Shown: positions 10,105 to 48,784 of the stretch, one piece after another
Position numbering within the stretch: position 1 is the stretch's first letter
Layout: each line of letters begins with the position of its first letter
Assembly (NCBI RefSeq): GCF_032062105.1
Contig: NW_026920581.1
Coordinates: 1,178,001 to 1,242,000, forward strand
Reading direction: 5' to 3'
DNA length: 64,000 nucleotides
Source of the DNA: Saccostrea cucullata
Taxonomy: Eukaryota
Notes under the pieces: model-generated
What the model was told of the DNA's origin: nothing
The model's input: the letters and a program-made list of their open reading frames with translations, nothing else
Database searches by the model: none
Program-made: the position numbers and the translations under genes

Positions 10105-10951
10105 TTAAAGCGAGCGCAGCGTCGCAAAGCGACGCTCACAAAGCGAGCTCAATAGACTAACGTGTAAGAACAGAGAAAATTCGGAATGAAATCTGTACAT
10201 ACGTCAGGCAATTTTTTCTGTGAAACATTCCCTTTACTACCCAATGTCCTTTGCGCAAATAAATAAATACTAACATACAGCATAAACGGCTTTCAGTATG
10301 TAGAAATCTTTCAGAGAAACAAAAAATAACTCTGCAATTTTTTCAACCCAAATTGCACTAGGTCTATAGTTTCAAACAGACGCTCGGCTGTCTCCGTAAG
10401 CTCAGACGAGCTCTGTGACGTCACAGGTAGTCGAGATGTCTCGCGCGGCTTGATGTTTGACGTGGCTGATCAATTTTTTCAAGTGTTTTTGATGGTATAA
10501 CTGCCAGGTCCAGCACAATACCCCGATAAAGGTTTATAGCTTGATAAAGCTATATAGCTTTATCAAGGTATTTAAAATACCTTGATCAAGGTATTTTATG
10601 TAATGAAAATTCAAAAAAAATCTTTAAAAATTAATTACTGAAAGTCGAGTTCTGAGTTGTTGTCAGTAAATTCACCCATGCATGTAAAGTACTCAAACAC
10701 AAACAAATCAGTAGAAAAACGTGTCGTGTGAGGAGACGTTATTTCATGCTTTCTTTTTGATACCAGAGCGTTTTCATGCACGAGTAGACACACTGACAAA
10801 AACTCAGAAGAGAACATGAAATACCTTGATCAAGGTATTTTAAAATACCTTGATGAAGCTATATAGCTTTATCAAGCTATATACCTTTATCGGGGTATTG
10901 TGCTGGACCTGACTGCGCTCCAACGCTTACGGTCACACCGTAAAACATATT
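10105..10951 (+). mobile_element. Helentron-like non-autonomous element (middle layer)
   Basis: T-run start; subterminal IR agcgagcgcag / ctgcgctccaacgct; 5' hairpin agcgtcgcaaagcgacgct; 3' hairpin ttacggtcacaccgtaa. Confidence 0.55.
10505..10911. mobile_element. MITE with ~90-bp TIRs and 5-bp TSD (inner layer)
   Basis: caggtccagcacaataccccgataaagg...cctttatcggggtattgtgctggacctg; TSD ACTGC at 10500-10504 and 10912-10916; TIRs built from palindromic sub-units such as aaataccttgatcaaggtattt. Confidence 0.85.
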
Positions 10952-13864
10952 AAAAATAAATTGATTTGGTAGCTAAATAAAGCTACCTCAGGTAGGTAAA
11001 TAAAGCTAAGTAGGTAAATAAAGTTACGTAGCTAAATCTAGTCATTGTACCAGACCTCGTAAGAAAAGGAAATAAAATCTCTTTATGTCTGCTAAAAACA
11101 ACATGGTGTTTGAATGAATAACAACGTTTGAATTGCTATTTATATTAAAGTAATATAACATAACATAAAATTCCATGCTTAACAAAAACAAAATTTTAAA
11201 AAATCATGCATACAAACCAAGCAGGTGCTCTATGTCACACTAAACCCTACTTTGTCTATGAAGATCAATGTAACAATAAACGTTCAACTGATTAAGATTC
11301 ATTTTGAATATTATAGTTACCTTCTTTACAGAAGAGTTCCAACAACAAAAGGAAAAACCTCTAACAGACTTACAGAGAAGATTTGGTAAATAATCAGCTT
11401 TCTTTTAACATGACATTGATTTTTATTACAAGATGCAACAGTTTTGTTAAATATGCAATCATGTATTATATATGGAATTAACAAAATTTCTTTCTTAGAC
11501 AATCTTAGTTTATTCTATCAGTGAAGATGTGGTCTGACATCTAATATCTAAGCTCATGTTCTGTTGTCATATTTGAAATCACCTATCAGTCTATAAGTTT
11601 TGAAATTTGCCTGAATGTTTTTAACGTCTTGTGTATTTTTTTGCAAATAAGTTTTTTTTTTATCGAAAAATTGCATTTGCAAACAAGCCTGTTGTTTTTG
11701 ATAACAGAATTTGCAAAATGTTAAATGATTGACTCTAAAAGAAGTTGTTGATATCCTTGTATCACCAACGTAATTGTCAATAGTCTTCCTTTTTTAAAAA
11801 ATATTCTTAAGGTGAACTTGATTTTGCATATTTTTTCAACTGGTAGACAATTAAAAACAGGGAGTAGTGAAAATTGTTGGAAATGGTGTTCCTGATTTGA
11901 TAGTCAATAGTTTTTTTCATCAGATTCTGAAACACTACATACAGGTACACAAACACCAAACTTGCTCAAATTTTTGACCCTGTAGTATATGATATACTAG
12001 GGGTCAAAAATTCAAATGAGTTTTGGTGCCTTTGATACAGGCAAGAGTATATCAGGTGGGATTTCACAATAGAAAACTTAAAGAAAATTGAATGCAATCA
12101 TAATGTTTATCATAAAGAAGAAGGTACAGTTTGGGCTTTATTTAATGTTCTTTAAAAGTTATGAAATTAGCTTTAACAATAATTGAGTAGAAGAATACGA
12201 TAAATCAGTAAAGACTATGGCACGAAGGTCAGCACCATTCTGGAAATATGACGTCAGTAATTTGGTACATTTCTATGTTCAATGCAAAACCTCAGAATGA
12301 CAAATTTCTGTGCTTAATTTCCTTTAGAAAATAGTGCTTGCCACCGTCGCCCACTTCAATTTTTTGGATATACATCGATGTATTATGTAAATTGCAATGA
12401 AAAATCACATATCTCAAAATCTATAGTAGTCTCTCTCCAACACAGGAGTTATGTTTCTTTTGTAACAATTAAGTAGAAAAAGTTACTGACTAGACCAGTG
12501 GCCTGTTGAACAAAATGAATGTTGGCCAAAACTTTCCAAGATTTATTTATCTCCAACGGAAATGTTCTTGAGCATCAGAAATGATTTAGAAACATTTTCT
12601 CAGTTGAACATGCAGGTCTCTGGATTTGAACTTGGAACTTTGAACTCTAGAAGTGTCCTTTACCAACAGCAGGGATGGGGTAATCGTAATCAGCTGTAAT
12701 CGATTACAGTTTGTCAAGTGATCATGAGTAATCAGTAATCATACATTTTTCTGATTACAAGTAATCGTAATTTAATCGATTACTCTGAAAAAAGGCCTGT
12801 AATCATGATTACTTTTTGATTACTTTATGATTACAATTACTAAAACAAAGTTCATAAAATCACGTTTTTTAATGATATTCAGTGAATATTTTCAGTGTAC
12901 CTATTTCTTTATAAGCAAAAGTTATTATAAAATCAGAAACTATATTTAGTTATATCTTCTTCTAATGCTTCCAGAAATGATTTTAATCAGGTCCATTGTC
13001 CAGGCAATGAGTATATAAATTCTATCAGTTCCTAGGTATAATCAGTTGTCAACTAGTCATTTCAAAATACTTGAGCAGCTTGGCCATTTTTACTAAGATA
13101 TATCTATTGAAAGAAAATTACTTTCAATAACAGGATCATTCTAAAGTTTGATTTTTTGGTTTTAATTAGTTAACATGCACTTGATGTAACATTTTCTTTT
13201 CCCTATAAATCCTTGATTTAACTTTTTTAAAAATCAAATGTTCCTTTTTTGCGCCATGTATTCTAGAAATCACCAATGTGTTTGATTTACAGTGTACATA
13301 AAAAGATATGTGTATTAATTTGTTTTAAAAAAAGGTATTAAGTTAGGTCAGCTTGGGTATTAACAATTATTAAACTATACATTCAACTGTTAATGTGATA
13401 AATCTTGTAAAAACATCTATTAATTGGCAGTTAAATTGAAAAAGTTCATTACTTATCACTTAATAATTATCAAGAAAGTCAATTAATTATGTAACAGTTC
13501 TCTATTGAATATCTTTATCCCTAACTATAATTCTGTTCAATTTGATTTATAAATTCCCCTCTCTCTCTCAACAATAACACAGATATCTACTTGCATTAAT
13601 TTGAAGATAGAGATAAAATGATATAATATAAAACTCATGCATCTATATGAAGAAATGGACCACCAAATTTTGTCTAAAATCTACCTTAAAAATTTAAAGG
13701 TCAAGTAGAAAGATATATGAAAATCTAAGTTTTTCTGGTTTAAACACTTCGCAAATATTACCAAAATAAAATGCTGGATTATAATTTGCTTTATTAACAG
13801 CAATAAACCATTTAAACTGGTATTAAATATACACCTGCACCGTAACCAATCTCTTTACAAACAA

Positions 13865-13901
13865 GTTATCTCCCTTCGAGAAAATGACGTCATTCGAGAC
13901 A
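13865..13901 (+). promoter_or_regulatory. Putative promoter module of the transposase (GTTATCTCCC plus CRE-containing 18-mer)
   Basis: ATGACGTCATTCGAGACA at 13884-13901, 65 nt before the ATG; exact inverted copy at 22012-22029. Confidence 0.55.
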
Positions 13902-13966: not shown

Positions 13967-16900
13967 ATGGTGCAGTGTGCCGCACTTAACTGCACAATAA
14001 AATCTGGCCAGGGAATTAGCCTGTATTTGTTTCCGAAAGATCCCAAATTTAGAAAAATTTGGACTCTCAAATTGAGAAGAGACGGTTTTCATCCTACTCA
14101 ATACAGTAAACTTTGTGAACGACATTTTGACAAAGATCAATTCTCGATAAATCCTGACATTGCAAACAACGTAAAGTTTCAGTTAAAAAACAAGATCTTG
14201 AAATCAGGAGCTGTGCCATCTCTATTCGATTACACGGATCCCAAAGAAAAAAGGCTATCGGTTAAAAGATCAGCTAGCCCCACGTCTCAGCAACATGACA
14301 TTCACAGGCCAGACGTTAGCATGGTTGGTCGTTCCAAGTCAGATGCCCTTGCGAAAATCACCAAAAGAAGGCGCTATAACGTAAGAAAATAATTTTGAAA
14401 ACCACTATTTAAAACATTTTAATATTTTGCAATATAGAAATATGGTTATTTAGGGTGACCGGTGACTTCAATGTTCAAATATTGATAAAACAAGTAGAGG
14501 AAATTCGACCAACATATGCACATCTTCAAAACGTAAACATGGTAACAATGTTAATAGTTTAAGTTAATATTCGGAACTGATTAACAAAATGTTAACGGAC
14601 GGTGGTCAATAATAATTATTTTTGTTTAGGCATATGCATTCCTAGTCATTTATTTTGATCACGAATGTATTTTTATCACAAGAGTGGCGAATCATATCAC
14701 GAATATCTATGTGTATATAAACAAGGTAACGTGTATTTTAACACATATGTTATAACATGTACATGTATAATGCACTGGCGCATTTAGAGGGGCGGCAGAT
14801 TTAAATGGAGGTTCAGCCCCCCCCCCCCCCCCCCAATGTGCAAAATATATCAAATTTTATTTTGGTGTGACAATATGCCCCTTAAAGTATCAAGTTAATC
14901 TGGGTCCTTAGGACATTTATCATTTTAATGATAGAACATTCTATCTACCCTAACCCCAGACTAGTACCCCCTTTTTTTCAAGATTCCTGGATCGGTCACT
15001 GTATAATGCACCAATGTATATTTTTGGATTATTTAATTGCTTGCGCTAAATATAGATGAGTATTGATGCATTGCAGATTTTAGATGCCAGTGATATTGAC
15101 AATGATGAATTACCACAACCACAAGATGATCAAAGATCAGGTGACACAGTCTGTCCAGCAAATTTTAAAGAAACAAACGTTCAACATGTTCAGTGCTATT
15201 CCACAATGTCCCAGACAACATATGATGTAGTTGTAAGTTTACTTAAATGTTTATGGCTGCTCCTTTTAAAAAGGGGAGGTCTGGTTCAAAAGGGGTAAAA
15301 AATTATGATTTGAGTTTTTGATATTTCTTATGATGTGCATGTTATATACATATACATGTACCACATTTACTTAATTTTTCATTATAATCATACCAATATC
15401 TTCATATCAATATAACCAGTAAACCTATTAATGAGAATAACATGACATGATTGATATACTGTACAAGATCAAATGTTTGTTGCACTTCCCCATTCCATTA
15501 ATTTGATTCTTTGGGTTTATTTTAGAAGCGACGCCATGTAAAACTACAAACAGAAATAAACATTTTATCTCCTCCTGATGTGGAAAAGGTTTCTACAGGA
15601 ACTCAGACTGAAGAGAGAATATCTGAATATCTTGACAACAGCTTCCTGACATCCACAGATGAAGGGGATGACAATGACACAGACTCAGACTGGGTTCCGG
15701 AAAGTGAGAATGAGGAGCACGATTCTGAACAAGACATTAACCCTGCTAAGGAAAGAAAGTTTATAGTTTTTGAATCCTGCTTAGATCAATTATTTACATC
15801 TTGCTACAATTGGATGCCAATGTACATTAAGAAAGACTATCATAGGCTCATACATTAGCATTAAGAGTTTATGTGAAAACTGCAGTGCTCAGAAAAAATG
15901 GGAAAGTCAGCCTACATCTAGTGCTATGCCCCTTGGTAATTTAATCATTGCAGGAGCTGTGTTATTTTCTGGGGGCAGTGCTCACAAATTCTTAACATTG
16001 TGTAGACATGCTTCAGTTCAGATGTTCAGCATTGGAACATACATGAAAATTCAGTCATTGTATTTAGTCCCAACTATAGAAGATGTTTGGCAAAGAGAGC
16101 AGTTACATCTCTTTACAGCAGCACAGGAGTCTGGAGAACCTTTGAGGCTGGGTGGAGATGGACGGTGTTGCTCACCTGGCCACACAGCCAAATATCTTTC
16201 ATACACTTTGATGGATCTGAAGACAAACAAAATCCTGGATACACAGCTTGTGCAGGTAATTACAAACTATCAAAACAATGAAAAAATGCTTAATTTGAAA
16301 TTATTATTTTGACATTATGTTTTAAATAGATATTTCTTAATTTTCTTGAAGTAAAATTGAACTATGAGACAGAATTTAATTTTTTTTGTTGTTGCTTTTA
16401 ATGAACCATGCTTATTTTTAATCATAGAAAAATGAAGTTAGAAACTCGTATGCCATGGAGCTGGAGGGTTTACAAAGAGGGCTTGCCAGAATTGCAGATG
16501 AGGATCTACAGATTTCACATTTGGTTACTGACCGCCATTCTCAGATAAAAAAGTACATGCGTGAAACCCATCCAGAAATAATACATTGGTTTGATTGCTG
16601 GCACATTGCTAAAGGTAACTTTCCTTTATAATTATGTATACTCTATACATCTGATCATATGTTAAAAAATTATTTTACAAGTATCTTTGAGTTTTAAAAC
16701 ATACATAAACATGTACCTTGATATAAACATGTATAAAGTAAAAATTCATTTGTAAGCTAACTTGGGCCCTGCCTCAAGATATAAAGTGTACATATAATGA
16801 CAAAACTGTCTGATTTTGATAGTGTATAAAAACTTGTTAAATAATCTGTGTTCAATGTCATGAATAATAATGAATTATATTTCATTGAAAATATTCAAAA

Positions 16901-17230
16901 TATGATAAAATAGTATATTTATGTATTGAAATTAGTGAAAAAATCAATTAATTCTTGTCTCAGGAATTTACAAGAAGTTAGAAGCTGTGAGCAAGAAGAA
17001 AAACTGTGAAATTGTTGGAGATTGGGCAAGGTCCATCAGCAATCACACTTATTGGTGTGCAATGAGTAGTGGCGGAGATGGTGAGTTGGTGTACCAGAAG
17101 TGGTGTTCTATTTTGAATCACGTGTGTAATGTTCATGAGGGGCATGGTGCAGAGTTTCCCAGGTGTGAACATGGAGATCTTGAAGACCGTCTTTGGATTC
17201 GTAGAGGTACACACACATATAAATCTATAC

Positions 17231-17277
<47 letters not shown>

Positions 17278-19551
17278 GAGAGTTATTATAAGTTATTATA
17301 TATATTTTAATATCTAAATATATATATAGTAATTCCTTGTATCCGTTTAAGTTTTTAATACATTTTAAAGTCAAGGGGAATGAATATGATGAAAATCACT
17401 TCGCAGTAAGTGTCAATTCATTATAAACAAGTTTGTTATATGTGTGGTTTACTGCTTAATTAAATACTAGCTTTTCCTGTAAAAGACTGTTGCCCCCCAC
17501 CCTTATTTTAATATTTCCAGCATTAGAACTCCAAAAATACATCCTTTATGACAAGATATCAATGTTTTTAGGTTCCAAAGCTTACGATGAGTTGGAAAAG
17601 GTTGTCAAAGGCCGGCTTCTTTTGACAGATATCAGAAAAATGTCTCCTGCAGAACAGACTTCTGGGCTTGAGGCTTTCCACAAGGTGCTCTGTCATTTTG
17701 CCCCTAAGTTTGTGCACTTCTTCCATGCACAAATGGAAGCACGGTACGTAATTAACTCTAAGGAACTTTGAAAATTGAAAGCTTTATTTTGAGGTGTATT
17801 GCATGAATTACTTAAGCCTTTAATTTACACTAAGGTTTTTTAGCTCACCTGAGCTGAAATTCAAGTGACCTTTTCTGATCACATTTTGTCTATAGCCCGT
17901 CTGTCCAGCTGTCCATCCGTCTGTAAACTTTTCACATTTTTGACTTCTCCAGAACAATTTTTCGACCAAACTTGCCACAAAGGGGAATCAAGTTTGCTCA
18001 AATGAAAGGCCACACCCCTTTTCAAGGGGAGATAATTAAGAAAAAGTGAAAATTTGGTGGCATGTTTCAAAATTCTCTTTTTCAAGAACCACTGAACCAA
18101 GAGTTGAAACATATACATGTATGTGAAACTTTCCTTACGTTGTGTAGACTAAGTTTGTTAAAATGATGAACTCTAGGGGTAAGTTTTACATAGTACTGGT
18201 AATCACTAATGTATAGGAATAAATCTTTAAAAATCTTCTCAAGAACAGCAAAACTATGATTGGTAATGTTGATATGGAATCATCCTCAGGTAGTGAAGAT
18301 TAAGAATATATTGACAGACTGAATAGCTACAGTGCCACCAATTGAAAAAATGTGTATTAAAAGTGCACAAAAAAGTGTGCACAGTTCTGTATTAATTCTT
18401 TCAAATTCTTACCTCAATTGCAAAAAAGCTAGATTTCAAAAAAATTCTTACTCCTCAGTTCTGCAGCTAGATTCAAATTTGTTCAAATCAAAACCCCCAC
18501 AATGAGGGGCCACAATGGAGGATCAAATTTTTACAAAGGAATATATAGGAAAACATGTTTAAAAATCTTATATTCAAGAACATCAAAGCCATTTGTTATA
18601 TTAATGTGGAAGCATCTTTAGGAAGTCTAAAATTTAAGTCCCCCCTCCCCCATTGAACATGTATTTTTTCAATACTAAACTGATTTGTGCTTTTCAGAGC
18701 AAATGTGCTCAAGTGAGTGATGTGGCCCATGGGCCTCTTTTTCTATATGAAAAGTTTCATAAAATTATTTTCAGAATCACTTTTTATAACTTTTTATAGG
18801 TTATATTTAGCCACATTGCATTTTAATGAAAATTCAACCAGGGAGCAGGCAAAAAATCAAGATGGTGATATGATATACAGTGTTTCATACCCAAAGGGAA
18901 GGAAGGGTGAAGGAGTTGCCAAAGAAGTAAAAATTCAACAAACTTTTAGTAAGTGCATGAATATAGTTATATACCTCTTCATTTAAATTCTCAAGCCAAA
19001 AAGTGTTATCCTTGTAAGATACCAGTATTGTATGTTGGCCTTCTACAAATAAGTTTTTAATATAGACTGATACTAGAGGTATTTGAAAGGAAGGTGATTG
19101 CCAAAATTTTAAGCTTCAGTAAACTATCAATAATAAATCATTTTTGAGTGCATCGGAATGTACGGAATAGGTAATGCAGTTTTAATATTAATTACTAAAA
19201 CTCCTTGGTTTGCAAGGAGTATCAAATACCTGTACAGGGTATAATAGGGTTTCTCGATGGAGATAAGATTTAATTTTTCACATGGAAAAATAGGATTCCT
19301 TTTTTATATCTGGTCTTGTAGAAATAATAAATCCTGCATAATGTCCAGTTGCTTGCTTGTTTCAATTGACAGATTATGTGAATGAACTGTTTGAAGACCT
19401 CATCTTCAGGAGAGAAGTCCACAATTCTTATGGAGAGGCGAGAGCAGCCAAAGCAATAAATGAGAAAGAAAGACCGAGACCAATTGCTCAGATGGAAGGA
19501 AGGGCTAGAAAAGAAGACATTGTGGCTACTCATAGATCCAGATTTTATTGA
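13967..19551 (+). CDS. Kolobok transposase: THAP DNA-binding domain, DDE core and H2CH motif (~750 aa if one frameshift is corrected)
   Basis: Exons 13967-14380, 15056-15232, 15526-16255, 16428-16614, 16964-17206, 17572-17743, 18800-18948, 19373-19551, all GT-AG. THAP: C-x4-C...P...W...CERHF...AVPSLF. Core motifs: GGDGRCCSPGHTAKY (D1), LVTDRH (D2), FDCWH, NHVCNVH...CEH, QTSGLEAFH (E), LHFNEN. The frame changes at ~15811 in exon 3. Confidence 0.88.
14773..15001. mobile_element. Small MITE in transposase intron 1
   Basis: cactggcgcatttag...ctggatcggtcactg imperfect TIR, internal poly-C, flanking duplication TATAATG. Confidence 0.6.
17230..17282. repeat. Compound (TA)n(GA)n microsatellite
   Basis: Directly visible in transposase intron 5. 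Confidence 0.9.
17839..18741 (+). mobile_element. Helentron/HINE-like element in transposase intron 6
   Basis: Starts tttagctcacctgagctgaaa, has a gtcc/gtct microsatellite, ends caagtgagtgatgtggcccatgggcctcttt; same family as 35060-36115. Confidence 0.8.
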
Positions 19552-19556
19552 ATAAA
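19544..19556. terminator. Bidirectional poly(A) signal TTTATT-G-AATAAA
   Basis: AATAAA on + at 19551-19556 and on - at 19549-19544, between and overlapping the two convergent stop regions. Confidence 0.6.
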
Positions 19557-19579: not shown

Positions 19580-21957
19580 TTATTCTGGATATTTAAAACC
19601 ACAATAGGTTTGGGAAGGAAAAGTCTGTCTGATTTTGCTGACAACACAAGATGGTAGAATACGTCTATTCTTCTTCCCAAGAATATGATAAACCCACCGA
19701 ACAAATCTTCTGTAGGCAAAATGTCTGTAAAGTCTGAAATATTGCAGAGGATATGCTCAACATAATCCTATATGTGCACTTATTTAGGCCTAAATTAAAA
19801 TGTTTGTTTGCCCTTAGCTGACCGAACTATCGAAATTAACCCGACTCAAAATATTTTATTGCTTTTTTCATTTACAATTTTTTTTTACCGTGGTAGTTGA
19901 ATCATTTCAACCCAGTTTAAAAATGTTCTTTGAGGTCATTTAGATGCTTAATTTAGTAGTGACTAGTTTTACTTATAAATATAATGGACTACCTTTTTTG
20001 TTTATTCAGTGCTTGCAGCCCTTACCTCCTTAGATATTGGTGAGAATATAGGATGTGAAATCGACACATTCTGAGGATTCAATTTTGTTCAAAGAGGGAC
20101 ACTGGTGTTAGGTTGGGGTTAAAACTGGGGATTAAATTTTACATGACGTTTGGACCCACGTTCTTTCAAAGGAATTTAGATGGAATTTTTTTCAAAACAA
20201 CCTTTTGAAGAGCAGCAAGAGGAAAATGACGCAGTCGAGCATTGTGACCCTCATGCTTCTTGTTATAATTTTAAGAAGAGAAAATTAAATATTTCTCCTA
20301 CCTACCTGCCCATTGTTAAAAAAATCTGGGTTGGTAAAGGGCAAACAAACATTTTTTTTTAAATATTCGACTAATCATTTATTACATGTACTTTGGACTG
20401 AAAGTTTTGACAGTAAAAAGGGGGAGAGGTGGCCATATCACTCGGAAGAAAAGGAAAATGATACCTGAACAGGAAAGACAAAATTGTGAGGAAAAGTGGA
20501 CTTTCCATGAGACTGAGTTGATCTTTTTTTTTAATTGTCATTATTTTGTGAATTGTAAAGTAAAATTAAATCCTTGTTTTGATATTTCAACAGGTTTGTC
20601 CCTATTTATTGAAATACCTAGCAGGGAACATTTAGGACAATTACACGCTTAGTTTCGACTTTCAGTAAGCCTGGCATTCTCGACGTTACCTAATTAACTT
20701 CTGAAATTTACACAGCTTCCTTCACTGTTGAAATGTACATATGATAGAAATGCGGCCGAATGTCAACTGGTGTAGTAAATAGCCAATTAAAAGTTCTCTA
20801 ATGGCACAGAGGTGGGGTATAAGTCGTCTCATCGTTGTCAACAACAATTTTAAGTTCCTGATGTTATTAATTTCTTTACCGATGAGAATCTACTAGTATT
20901 CGCTATTACGTAGCGCCGGGAATGCCACGCCCTACTGAAAGTCCAAACTAAGGGGAAAATCATCCTAAAAATAATTTAATAGAAGGTGTAGGTTCTTCCG
21001 CTTACAGCTAGGGGCTTAACTGGATTATAGAGTAACTGAGGATTACATCATTATATGCAGGAAAATTCTCCGGCCCCTGGGTCTTAGGGAAACCCTGTAA
21101 TCAACAATGCTGAAATTCCCTTTGGAAGGAACACCTCCCTCCCTTGACCTGTCTATGAAACTTACTCATGGATGGGTTCTCTTTCATTTTGTCTGCCATT
21201 ATCCTGTATGTATTCATAGTAAGAAGTCTCCAACACATAATGATTTAAACAATTTACGATGAAACCTTCATGCTCAGTAATACATTGGAGAGATTTCTCA
21301 TCGACCTTTCCATTTACTATGTTGGTGTTTCGGCAGCATTTGTTTTCCCTGCTAGTAGGCATTTCCACACAGTTTCCACAATTACACCTGAAGTGAGGGC
21401 ATAATAAATCTCGCATTTGGGTTCTGGTTAAAAAATTGTTAAACACTGTATCATAGAACGTTCAGGCAAACAAATCTGACAAGCAAATAAATAAATAAAT
21501 AAGGAGACATAACTTTAAAATTCCTGTATTGATTGATTGATTTTATGTTATTTAACACCCCTCTCTAAAATTTTCACTCATAAGTCATAAGGAGACGCCA
21601 CCACTGATATCAGTTTTACCTTAAGATGTTTCCTAATATGTACGCCCGGGAGCCTGATGCATGTCATTTTATTTTTGTGGCTAAACGTAATATACATGTA
21701 AAAACACAATAAATTAATTAGGCCTAACCTACATACCAACTCTCGACAGGTTCCCTAGTGACGTCTTCAGAGCTTGTCGGCGATTCCCTTCCCGATTCCG
21801 AGTGCGATTCATGATGATCACTTTCTGACAAACTATTACATGTATTAGTAGAACGATCTTTACCCAAAGGTTCAAACATGTATGGCTGTATATGCAGTGT
21901 CAAATCAACTTCGGGTGTTTCACCGTCACTGTCATTATCTTCCATAAAACGAGCCAT
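19580..21957 (-). CDS. Kolobok accessory protein (KolX-like), homologous to the P2X7 C-terminal ballast domain, 198 aa
   Basis: Exons 21957-21737, 21387-21166, 19733-19580 (597 nt, GT-AG, in phase). Acidic N-terminus with QPYMFEP, then WCNCGNCVEMPTSRENKCC...QCITEHEGF...CLN...LYRHFAYRRFVRWVYHILGKKNRRILPSCVVSKIRQTFPSQTYCGFKYPE*. The last exon is missing from the supplied ORF track, which shows a different frame there. Confidence 0.9.
19797..20356. mobile_element. MITE in KolX intron 2
   Basis: Inverted repeat aaaatgtttgtttgccctt / aagggcaaacaaacatttt. Confidence 0.6.
20648..20952. mobile_element. Second MITE in KolX intron 2
   Basis: ~48-bp imperfect TIR cttagtttcgactttcagtaagcctggcattctcgacg / cgccgggaatgccacgccctactgaaagtccaaactaag. 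Confidence 0.7.
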
Positions 21958-22011: not shown

Positions 22012-22045
22012 TGTCTCGAATGACGTCATGAACAGGGGAGGTAAC
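22012..22045 (-). promoter_or_regulatory. Putative promoter module of the KolX-like gene (GTTACCTCCC plus CRE-containing 18-mer)
   Basis: The minus strand reads GTTACCTCCC...ATGACGTCATTCGAGACA, 54 nt before the ATG at 21957. Confidence 0.55.
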
Positions 22046-42989: not shown

Positions 42990-43900
42990 TATAAGATAAG
43001 ATAAGATAAGATTTATTAATACCAATTTGGGGCCCATCAGGGCATACAAGTAATAAGGAAAAAAAAACATACAAGCAGAAATTCAAAATTGATAGCAGTA
43101 ACTAACAAAAGATAAATGATGTTACAGCAGTTGGGGATTACAACATACATAATCAATATACTGTAAATAAAAGTTTGTTTAAAGTATTTCTATATATTAC
43201 TCTTTTGTATTTATTTGTTTCTTTGTTTAACATTGCATAATTTGCTATTTCTTATTTTAAAGATATTGATTAAAAAATTACCCAGCTTGATAAGCAACAT
43301 GTCATCTTCATTAGACATAATCCATAAAAATTTTTCTTTATTTGTTAAAGTATAGAAATTTTTATTACTTTTAGCAATAATATTAAAAAAGTCATCTCTA
43401 TCATGCTTATATAATGGACATTCAATCAGTGAGTGTATCTCATCTTCCACACAGTTCATGTCGCACATTCTACAAATTCTTTCATTTCTTGCAAGGGTGG
43501 TTTGCTCTCCAGCAGAGTTTAGTTTTTTTTCGTACCTTCCACTTTCTATTCTGAGGTTATGTGAACTCACTCTAAATTTGCATATAATTTTTCTTTGTTC
43601 AAAATTTTTTGATAATAAATACTTTTCAATTTCAAAACTTCTTTTTATATAGAAATATGTTGTAAGTTTACCCGATAGACAACCATCATCTCTTTGTTTA
43701 AACCAATATTGAAGGAAATCTTCTCTAATAATTTTTTTCAGATGTTTCTTTAAAGTTATTAGTTTCATTGATTTACATCTTGACAAATCTATGCCCATTC
43801 TGTTACAGAAATATGTTACATTTGAAAACTAACTATTTACATTACAACTGTCCAAGATAATGCTTTCTTTGTATGCACTGTATAACAAAGAGTCTATATG
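42990..43900 (-). mobile_element. 5'-truncated non-LTR retrotransposon (RTEX-like 3' end)
   Basis: ORF 43211-43798 has FRVSSHNLRIESGRY...RICRMCDMNCVEDEIHSLIEC (post-RT CCHC knuckle). The 3' end is AATAAA followed by a (TCTTA)n tail at ~43017-42990. Confidence 0.8.
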
Positions 43901-48405: not shown

Positions 48406-48784
48406 TTAAGGAATGAAGCTGATTTCAACTTATGTTATCCGATATAACATAACTTGGGGCAGTTTACGCTTTATAAACCACTTCATAAACCGCGAAGCGG
48501 TTTATAAGAAAGCGTAAACTGCCCCAAGTTTTGTTATATCGGATAACATAAGTTGAAATTAGCTTCATTCCTTATAATTTAATTTCTATATAGATAATGA
48601 GACAATTATTTCCCCCGGAAAAGGGCTTCAAAATGAGCATTATTTTAAAAGTAACGTCAAGCGGAGTAATACGTTTTTGACGTAAATCATTGTGACGTAG
48701 GCAAGTTATGTTATACAAAATGTTATATGTTACTCTGAATGATTCAGCCAATGAAATTGCTTGATACAAGTGAAATTAAATTAT
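48406..48784 (+). mobile_element. Hairpin element (Crypton-like), copy B
   Basis: Palindrome 48407-48574 plus a tail highly similar to 24624-24990. Confidence 0.7.

Follow-up and report, generated by a model that had tools for sequence, protein, structure and literature searches.

The 64,000-nt stretch of Saccostrea cucullata DNA analysed here (hereafter the window) contains a 198-aa gene that resembles the cytoplasmic ballast domain of the P2X7 receptor and lies inside a DNA transposon, which raises the question of what such a protein does for a mobile element. The initial annotation had named it KolX, the second gene of Kolobok elements, and had seen in it a possible zinc- and guanine-nucleotide-binding partner of the transposase as well as a plausible source of the domain found on P2X7.

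The locus holds a single copy of a Kolobok Kol0 cut-and-paste transposon that has spread recently in S. cucullata, an assignment based on the TTAA sites, the RR..YY ends, the THAP-DDE transposase motifs and KolX, the features by which this lineage is defined (PMC9587614). The element measures 8,503 bp and is bounded by 10-bp terminal inverted repeats (TIRs), the left of which (AGGTCAAGTA, 13698-13707, plus strand) is the same in sister copies L012-L014 and pairs with the right one (22191-22200, minus strand), and by matching TTAA target-site duplications at 13694-13697 and 22201-22204 (no strand). Its termini read AG..CT (AGG..CCT), that is 5'-RR and YY-3', as Kolobok requires, and the TTAA duplication required of this superfamily is present in the window element and on both sides of three complete sisters (L012, L013 and L014) with unrelated flanks. 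In a fourth sister, known in part (L011; C10121), the last transposase intron is interrupted by a 2,355-bp insertion, at the position of window 19301. At least five copies exist in the genome, about 99.6% identical (pairwise 99.5-99.8%), and a search with KolX exon 2 returned five 100% matches and approximately 100 more distant ones. The window flanks are the two halves of an older repeat, contiguous (within approximately 10 bases) at loci such as C22729, C9955 and C23415, and because both flanks join into one uninterrupted repeat at these other loci, the element ends are confirmed. Two other identities were rejected: piggyBac, by the termini and a transposase of the wrong type, and KolobokP, by the absence of 450/660-bp direct repeats at the ends and by a second gene that is KolX, not a His-Me nuclease.

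Several further repeats and genes were seen in and around the element. The older, high-copy repeat that hosts it (approximately 12670-13697 and 22201-22430) bears GTAATCGATTAC-like subterminal repeats, and its halves are contiguous at many loci. Intron repeats were found at 19791-20361 (25-nt inverted ends) and at 20631-20969 (37-nt inverted ends), with 20634-20966 missing from an older relative (L015), and an intron stretch at approximately 17835-18740 resembles other repeats of the window. The intron repeats are common to all young sisters and were therefore mobilised together with the element. Elsewhere, two B-box/NHL (TRIM-like) genes typical of oysters lie on the minus strand at 25392-27074 and 29963-31612, the second split into two ORFs; a 195-aa ORF (43211-43798, minus strand), for which a Pfam search returned no match, looks like the zinc-knuckle region at the C-terminus of a LINE reverse transcriptase; and short MITE-like elements with long near-perfect inverted arms occur at 10505-10911, 24625-24780 and 48407-48574, the last two belonging to one family.

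The transposase gene occupies eight exons on the plus strand. Exon 1 (13967-14380) encodes the THAP domain (PF05485, E = 2.8e-14), and exon 2 (15056-15232) is predicted from AG/GT sites, phase 0 and a frame check, with an uncertain acceptor. Exon 3 (15526-16255) carries the first catalytic D (GDGR), and exon 4 (16428-16614) the second D (TDRH) with the C/DxxH signature (DCWH); the match of exon 4 to MULE PF10551 fell short of the cut-off (E = 0.0022). Exon 5 (16964-17206) contributes a His/Cys zinc finger between D and E, exon 6 (17572-17743) the catalytic E (GLEAFH), and exons 7 (18800-18948) and 8 (19373-19551) the remainder and the stop; the exon 5 junction agrees with a relative's contig (L031), which also covers exons 6 to 8. 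The Kolobok signature set (THAP domain, DDE triad, C/DxxH, and a zinc finger ahead of E) is thus present, with catalytic roles assigned from motifs and not from alignment to Repbase; in sister L012 the corresponding residues are GDGR 408, TDRH 475, DCWH 497, the His/Cys cluster 530-573 and GLEAFH 616. The frame is open for 750 aa in L012, L013 and L014. Comparison with these sisters revealed a private 2-bp deletion after 15810 in exon 3 of the window copy, either a real mutation or an assembly error, which shifts the frame to a stop at codon 308; since its transposase is frameshifted, this copy could move only by a sister's enzyme. The two genes are convergent, with stops 28 bp apart, so that KolX does face the transposase as first described, but the transposase it faces is frameshifted in the window.

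KolX lies on the minus strand in three exons. Exon 1 (21737-21957, 221 nt) encodes an N-terminus that is acidic (18 D/E, 4 K/R), predicted to be disordered and marked by a conserved PY..EP motif, exon 2 (21166-21387, 222 nt) six of the seven zinc-site cysteines, and exon 3 (19580-19733, 154 nt) a basic segment (11 K/R, 2 D/E) with the motifs RH.AYR, LGKKNRR, LPSC, IR..FP and Y.GFK. The exons sum to 597 nt, that is 198 aa and a stop, and are separated by GT-AG introns of 349 and 1,432 nt. This exon model, the enclosing TIRs and RefSeq XP_062590783.1, which is identical to window KolX when exons are compared singly, agree with the intact three-exon gene of the initial annotation, and four more 198-aa RefSeq models cluster with that entry. 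All the ballast motifs listed there occur in order in the joined exon frame (WCNCGNC 74, ENKCC 88, QCIT 108, YRHFAYR 150, ILPSC 173, KIRQTFP 181 and YCGFK 191), but the F of the quoted YRHFAYR is private to the window copy, with L in four sisters. Window KolX has three private amino-acid changes relative to its sisters, which fits drift after insertion.

We searched the window KolX exons singly, with the exon join frame-checked, and used database proteins P0003 and P0010 for full-length searches; P0010, the RefSeq protein encoded by a sister copy, differs from window KolX at three residues and also served as the fold model. Exon 3 alone passed the cut-off for PF20478 (E = 6.7e-10) and matched rat P2X7 546-594 in the PDB (E = 4e-5). 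Exon 2 alone matched PF20478 weakly (E = 0.058), and in the PDB its sole match was a chance defensin, with P2X7 not found. P0010 aligned to rat P2X7 473-594 (E = 1.8e-10), including all seven cysteines, such that KolX C75, 77, 80, 91, 92, 109 and 177 correspond to rat C477, 479, 482, 498, 499, 506 and 572. In its AlphaFold model, pLDDT was 80-92 for most of residues 71-190 and below 50 for the disordered N-terminus (9-65). Foldseek returned only P2X7 entries under E 0.01 (best E = 3.5e-5), and in a VIA structure search of 48,161 chains 6u9v scored Z 11.3 (rmsd 4.1 over 122 residues), the next chain reaching 3.4. No nucleic-acid-binding fold appeared among the 48,161 chains, every other Z being ≤3.4.

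PF20478 is the only Pfam domain on the 198-aa sister protein. The P2X channel domain is absent, as had been claimed, and a true P2X7 receptor gene is ruled out on that ground; the RefSeq label 'P2X purinoceptor 7-like' on these oyster genes is misleading, since they are transposon genes, not receptors. Ballast homology, the seven matching cysteines, the KolX identity and a transposon source of the P2X7 domain, all proposed at the outset, are supported by these data and were already published. Kojima & Bao 2022 (PMC9587614) describe KolX of Kol0 as having the cytoplasmic ballast fold and seven cysteines, trace P2X7 to the fusion of KolX to a P2X4-like gene, and regard Nanor as a probable domesticated KolX. 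Rump 2020 (PMC7016195) describes the stand-alone ballast domain across animals, including oyster. The ballast-homolog family comprises 1,663 clusters at 50% identity, and an ESM Atlas search for relatives without PF20478 gave a single match at 0.81, which is chance level. A profile search with PF20478 also uncovered another group of ballast genes in the genome, more diverged and with a different exon structure, the best of them (C4725, C165 and C19697) having the domain nearly whole in one frame.

Conservation was assessed over 149 homolog rows (122 complete rows for residue combinations), in which the seven cysteines were 96-100% conserved, this and the following percentages leaning high because homologs had been ranked by their similarity to the query. 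We take the seven to be the zinc-site cysteines of P2X7, which McCarthy 2019 reportedly identified, and by analogy with P2X7 they very probably coordinate two zinc ions and stabilise the fold. The nucleotide site is less completely kept. The rat P2X7 GDP residues are R546, H547, R574, R578 and K583 (PMC7016195), and window KolX has R, H, V, R and S at the equivalent positions. Across the 149 rows, R546 (97%) and R578 (95%) are nearly invariant, H547 is matched in 24% (Tyr 53%, Phe 12%), and R574 and K583 are each matched in approximately 2%, with Val (83%) and Ser (67%) in their places. Two of the 122 complete homologs have basic residues at the R574 and K583 equivalents, and none of the 122 has all five rat residues together. 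Other positions of the domain are well kept, namely Y550 (97%), G590 (KolX G193, 89%) and F591 (KolX F194, 88%). Jointly, R151, R171 and R183 occur in 111 of 122 homologs, with H, Y or F at 152 in 110. R171 is a KolX-specific arginine (95% conserved) that aligns to rat 566, and because it is adjacent to the equivalents of A567 and L569, which contact GDP in rat P2X7 (PMC9859053), we infer that it could substitute for the lost phosphate-contacting residues.

Two further parts of the P2X7 site bear on this point. The C-terminal helix-loop, which clamps GDP in P2X7, whose soluble ballast binds GDP at 2.6 uM (PMC9574498), is well conserved in KolX. The P2X7 cavity is also partly built by helix a9 of the neighbouring subunit (PMC9859053), and this helix lies outside the KolX-P2X7 aligned region and is absent from KolX. 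Of the GDP residues, invertebrates retain R546 and R578 alone according to Rump 2020 (PMC7016195), where it is nevertheless proposed that the stand-alone domain may still bind GDP. The proposed guanine-nucleotide binding is thus favoured by the retention of these two arginines in the family and weakened by the variable H547, the loss of R574 and K583, the absence of any homolog with all five residues, and the missing a9; GDP binding by KolX is plausible. The pocket is conserved and basic; a free guanine nucleotide and a nucleic-acid phosphate are both possible ligands. Residue conservation suggests that the arginine pocket (R151, R156, R171 and R183 with the C-terminal Y.GF clamp) probably binds some phosphate-bearing ligand, of which a free guanine nucleotide would be the single likeliest, if at rather less than an even chance. 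H113 (86%) and C120 (91%) are likewise conserved in KolX and unmatched in rat P2X7, and are possible extra metal ligands.

KolX and the transposase travel together. At 14 of 16 more distant KolX loci, transposase exons lay tail-to-tail within 10 kb, and at the other two no transposase was found within that distance. Eight complete elements of distinct families hold KolX inside TIR pairs after TTAA, and the same layout of KolX and transposase recurs in Mytilus and Priapulus. Since synonymous sites are saturated between distant Kol0 families (pS 0.73-0.89), which leaves dN/dS undefined, pN was compared instead, and it was about equal or lower in KolX ballast exons than in transposase exons at 10 of 10 distant loci (for example 0.139 vs 0.153 and 0.316 vs 0.379). 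KolX is under purifying selection with constraint like that of the transposase, and was therefore kept by selection while the element spread. Co-inheritance and constraint together demonstrate that the element benefits from KolX, but not that KolX touches the transposase. Evidence of expression comes from relatives. A 1,385-nt Logan contig (L031), whose protein clusters with Crassostrea gigas sequences, joins KolX exons 2-3 and transposase exons 4-8 on opposite strands, with one split codon at each junction and exon boundaries as in the window, and contig L032 joins KolX exons 2-3 alike, exon 1 being open in that frame as well. We read both as spliced transcripts.

The two ends of the element mirror each other inside the TIRs as well. 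An 18-bp inverted repeat with the CRE-like core TGACGTCA lies at 13884-13901 (plus strand), 187 bp from the left end and 83 bp ahead of the transposase ATG, and its counterpart at 22012-22029 (minus strand) is 172 bp from the right end and 72 bp ahead of the KolX ATG. TGACGT or its complement occurs 158-196 bp inside both ends in 7 of 8 complete elements (background 0.00064 per base), and in five of the eight the core sits within a 17-18-bp inverted repeat (shuffle maxima 14-16). In the Priapulus element the motif is 206 bp from both ends. The repeat was recorded at L016, L017, L023, L026, L029, L030, L033 and L034 (KolX end only for L034) and is common to Kol0 families with saturated synonymous sites. 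It may serve the two promoters as a common site for a host bZIP factor, or may be where the transposase binds inside the ends; P elements likewise carry internal inverted repeats (PMC7776569), and L032 reaches well upstream of the motif, which counts against a simple promoter reading. At the shared 3' end, back-to-back AATAAA hexamers (19549-19544 on the minus strand, 19551-19556 on the plus strand) are predicted poly(A) signals, the use of which would bring the 3' ends of the two mRNAs into overlap. Contig L031, which carries both genes, implies such overlap and is in keeping with the hexamers at 19544-19556; overlapping ends suggest a possible short dsRNA. Neither the subterminal CRE-like repeat nor the overlapping 3' ends of Kol0 were found in the literature searched, and the repeat, a minor feature that seems not to have been reported, could be of use in locating the promoters or end-binding sites of Kol0.

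What, then, does KolX do? Our preferred reading, held with slightly more belief than doubt, is that it would be an accessory subunit of the transposition complex, stabilised by zinc and acting through its arginine pocket. In the Harbinger transposon, a second protein of Myb/SANT type recruits or imports the transposase, and by that analogy KolX is likely to serve the element that carries it, assisting transposition as an accessory partner. Whether mirror-image promoters at the two ends, with their shared CRE-like site, cause both genes to be made together is an evenly balanced matter. The accessible texts of PMC9587614 and PMC7016195 give no role for KolX in transposition, a search that was thin on subscription journals found no later publication assigning one, and the function of the ballast GDP and zinc sites is unknown in P2X7 too (PMC9859053). 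A precedent for a nucleotide is offered by the P-element transposase, a THAP-DDE enzyme that requires GTP for end pairing and strand transfer, uses its own insertion domain for this, and is the only transposase known to do so (PMC7776569). Because that enzyme belongs to the same C/DxxH group as Kolobok (PMC9587614), a KolX nucleotide site acting in trans is a sensible hypothesis. We nevertheless regard it as unlikely that a nucleotide in the KolX pocket gates end pairing or strand transfer in this way, and give a similarly small chance to the full scheme, in which Kol0 would have a two-subunit transposase, KolX supplying the guanine-nucleotide site in trans and CRE-containing mirror-image promoters co-expressing both subunits. 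If this were true, the P2X7 GDP/GTP site would be what remains of a site for a transposition cofactor. Most Kolobok lineages are without KolX or have nucleases or helicases in its place (PMC9587614), and since they transpose lacking it, the Kolobok transposase fold can in general do without KolX. The suggestion that KolX regulates or targets the transposase is conjecture; what supports a role in transposition is co-inheritance and equal constraint.

Other readings explain part of the same evidence. KolX might instead use its basic C-terminal face to bind RNA, or the ends or subterminal repeat of the transposon DNA, and so recruit or import the transposase, GDP binding having come later in P2X7. 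Exon 3 is strongly basic, K/R are conserved at 151, 156, 160, 168, 171, 183 and 195, R171 and the LG[KR] loop are KolX-specific, and R574/K583 are absent, being lost outside mammals according to PMC7016195. Yet the fold search, with its other Z scores ≤3.4, yielded no nucleic-acid-binding match, the transposase already has a THAP domain of its own, and the residues common to KolX and P2X7 are those lining the GDP site, so this reading has a minor share of our belief. A host-directed factor that raises expression or survival of the element through anti-silencing, transcription or signalling, with no transposase contact, is also unlikely, and a little more so. It would suit the acidic, disordered N-terminus, the two domestications of KolX for host roles as Nanor and P2X7 (PMC9587614) and the action in transcription proposed for Nanor (PMC7016195); no host target is indicated, however, and an effector acting in trans would aid non-carriers, yet KolX is constrained like the transposase, an objection that holds equally for transposases themselves.

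The tail-to-tail arrangement invites the further idea that KolX represses or limits transposition, either as a protein inhibitor or through 3'-overlapping antisense RNA from the convergent gene. The stops 28 bp apart, the back-to-back hexamers and both spliced genes on opposite strands of L031 accord with it, but an antisense role would not keep seven cysteines and an arginine pocket across phyla, and the predicted 3' overlap is merely tens of bases, which makes repression improbable. That the gene is a passenger captured from the host, or a Nanor-like gene domesticated there, and does nothing for the element is scarcely credible: the RefSeq name and the two loci lacking a nearby transposase are what speak for it, whereas KolX lies within TIRs in another phylum as well as in at least eight distinct complete elements here, and its divergence keeps pace with that of the transposase. 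Linkage, TIR enclosure and the parallel pN values largely rule this out.

The closest known system is Kolobok Kol0 of the Kolobok-1_XT type, which shares with the window element the TTAA, RR..YY ends, THAP-DDE transposase, C/DxxH signature, internal zinc finger and KolX with seven cysteines. The P2X7 ballast (PF20478; PDB 6u9v, 8tr5) has the fold of KolX, its seven cysteines and E496, R546, Y550, R578, G590 and F591. Unlike P2X7, KolX has no channel and no a9-a12, carries V at R574 and S at K583, and is variable at H547 in the family; it adds the conserved R171, C120 and H113 and an acidic N-terminal tail. Nanor and the ZCD proteins (PTHR36981; PMC7016195) resemble KolX as stand-alone ballasts that keep R546 and R578 and for which GDP binding has been proposed; that paper did not recognise the transposon, and PMC9587614 treats Nanor as a domesticated KolX. 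The P-element transposase (PMC7776569) is like Kol0 in its THAP-DDE architecture, C/DxxH group, internal inverted repeats and guanine-nucleotide precedent, but its GTP site is an insertion domain in the same chain with a fold unrelated to the ballast (no such structure match), so the parallel is a functional analogy only. Because the homology and the origin story are already published, the locus adds no new class, and it shows no difference in kind from published Kol0; what it offers is an S. cucullata family that is young and includes three copies with open frames, and hence a direct route to KolX function and to the role of the ancestor of the P2X7 ballast.
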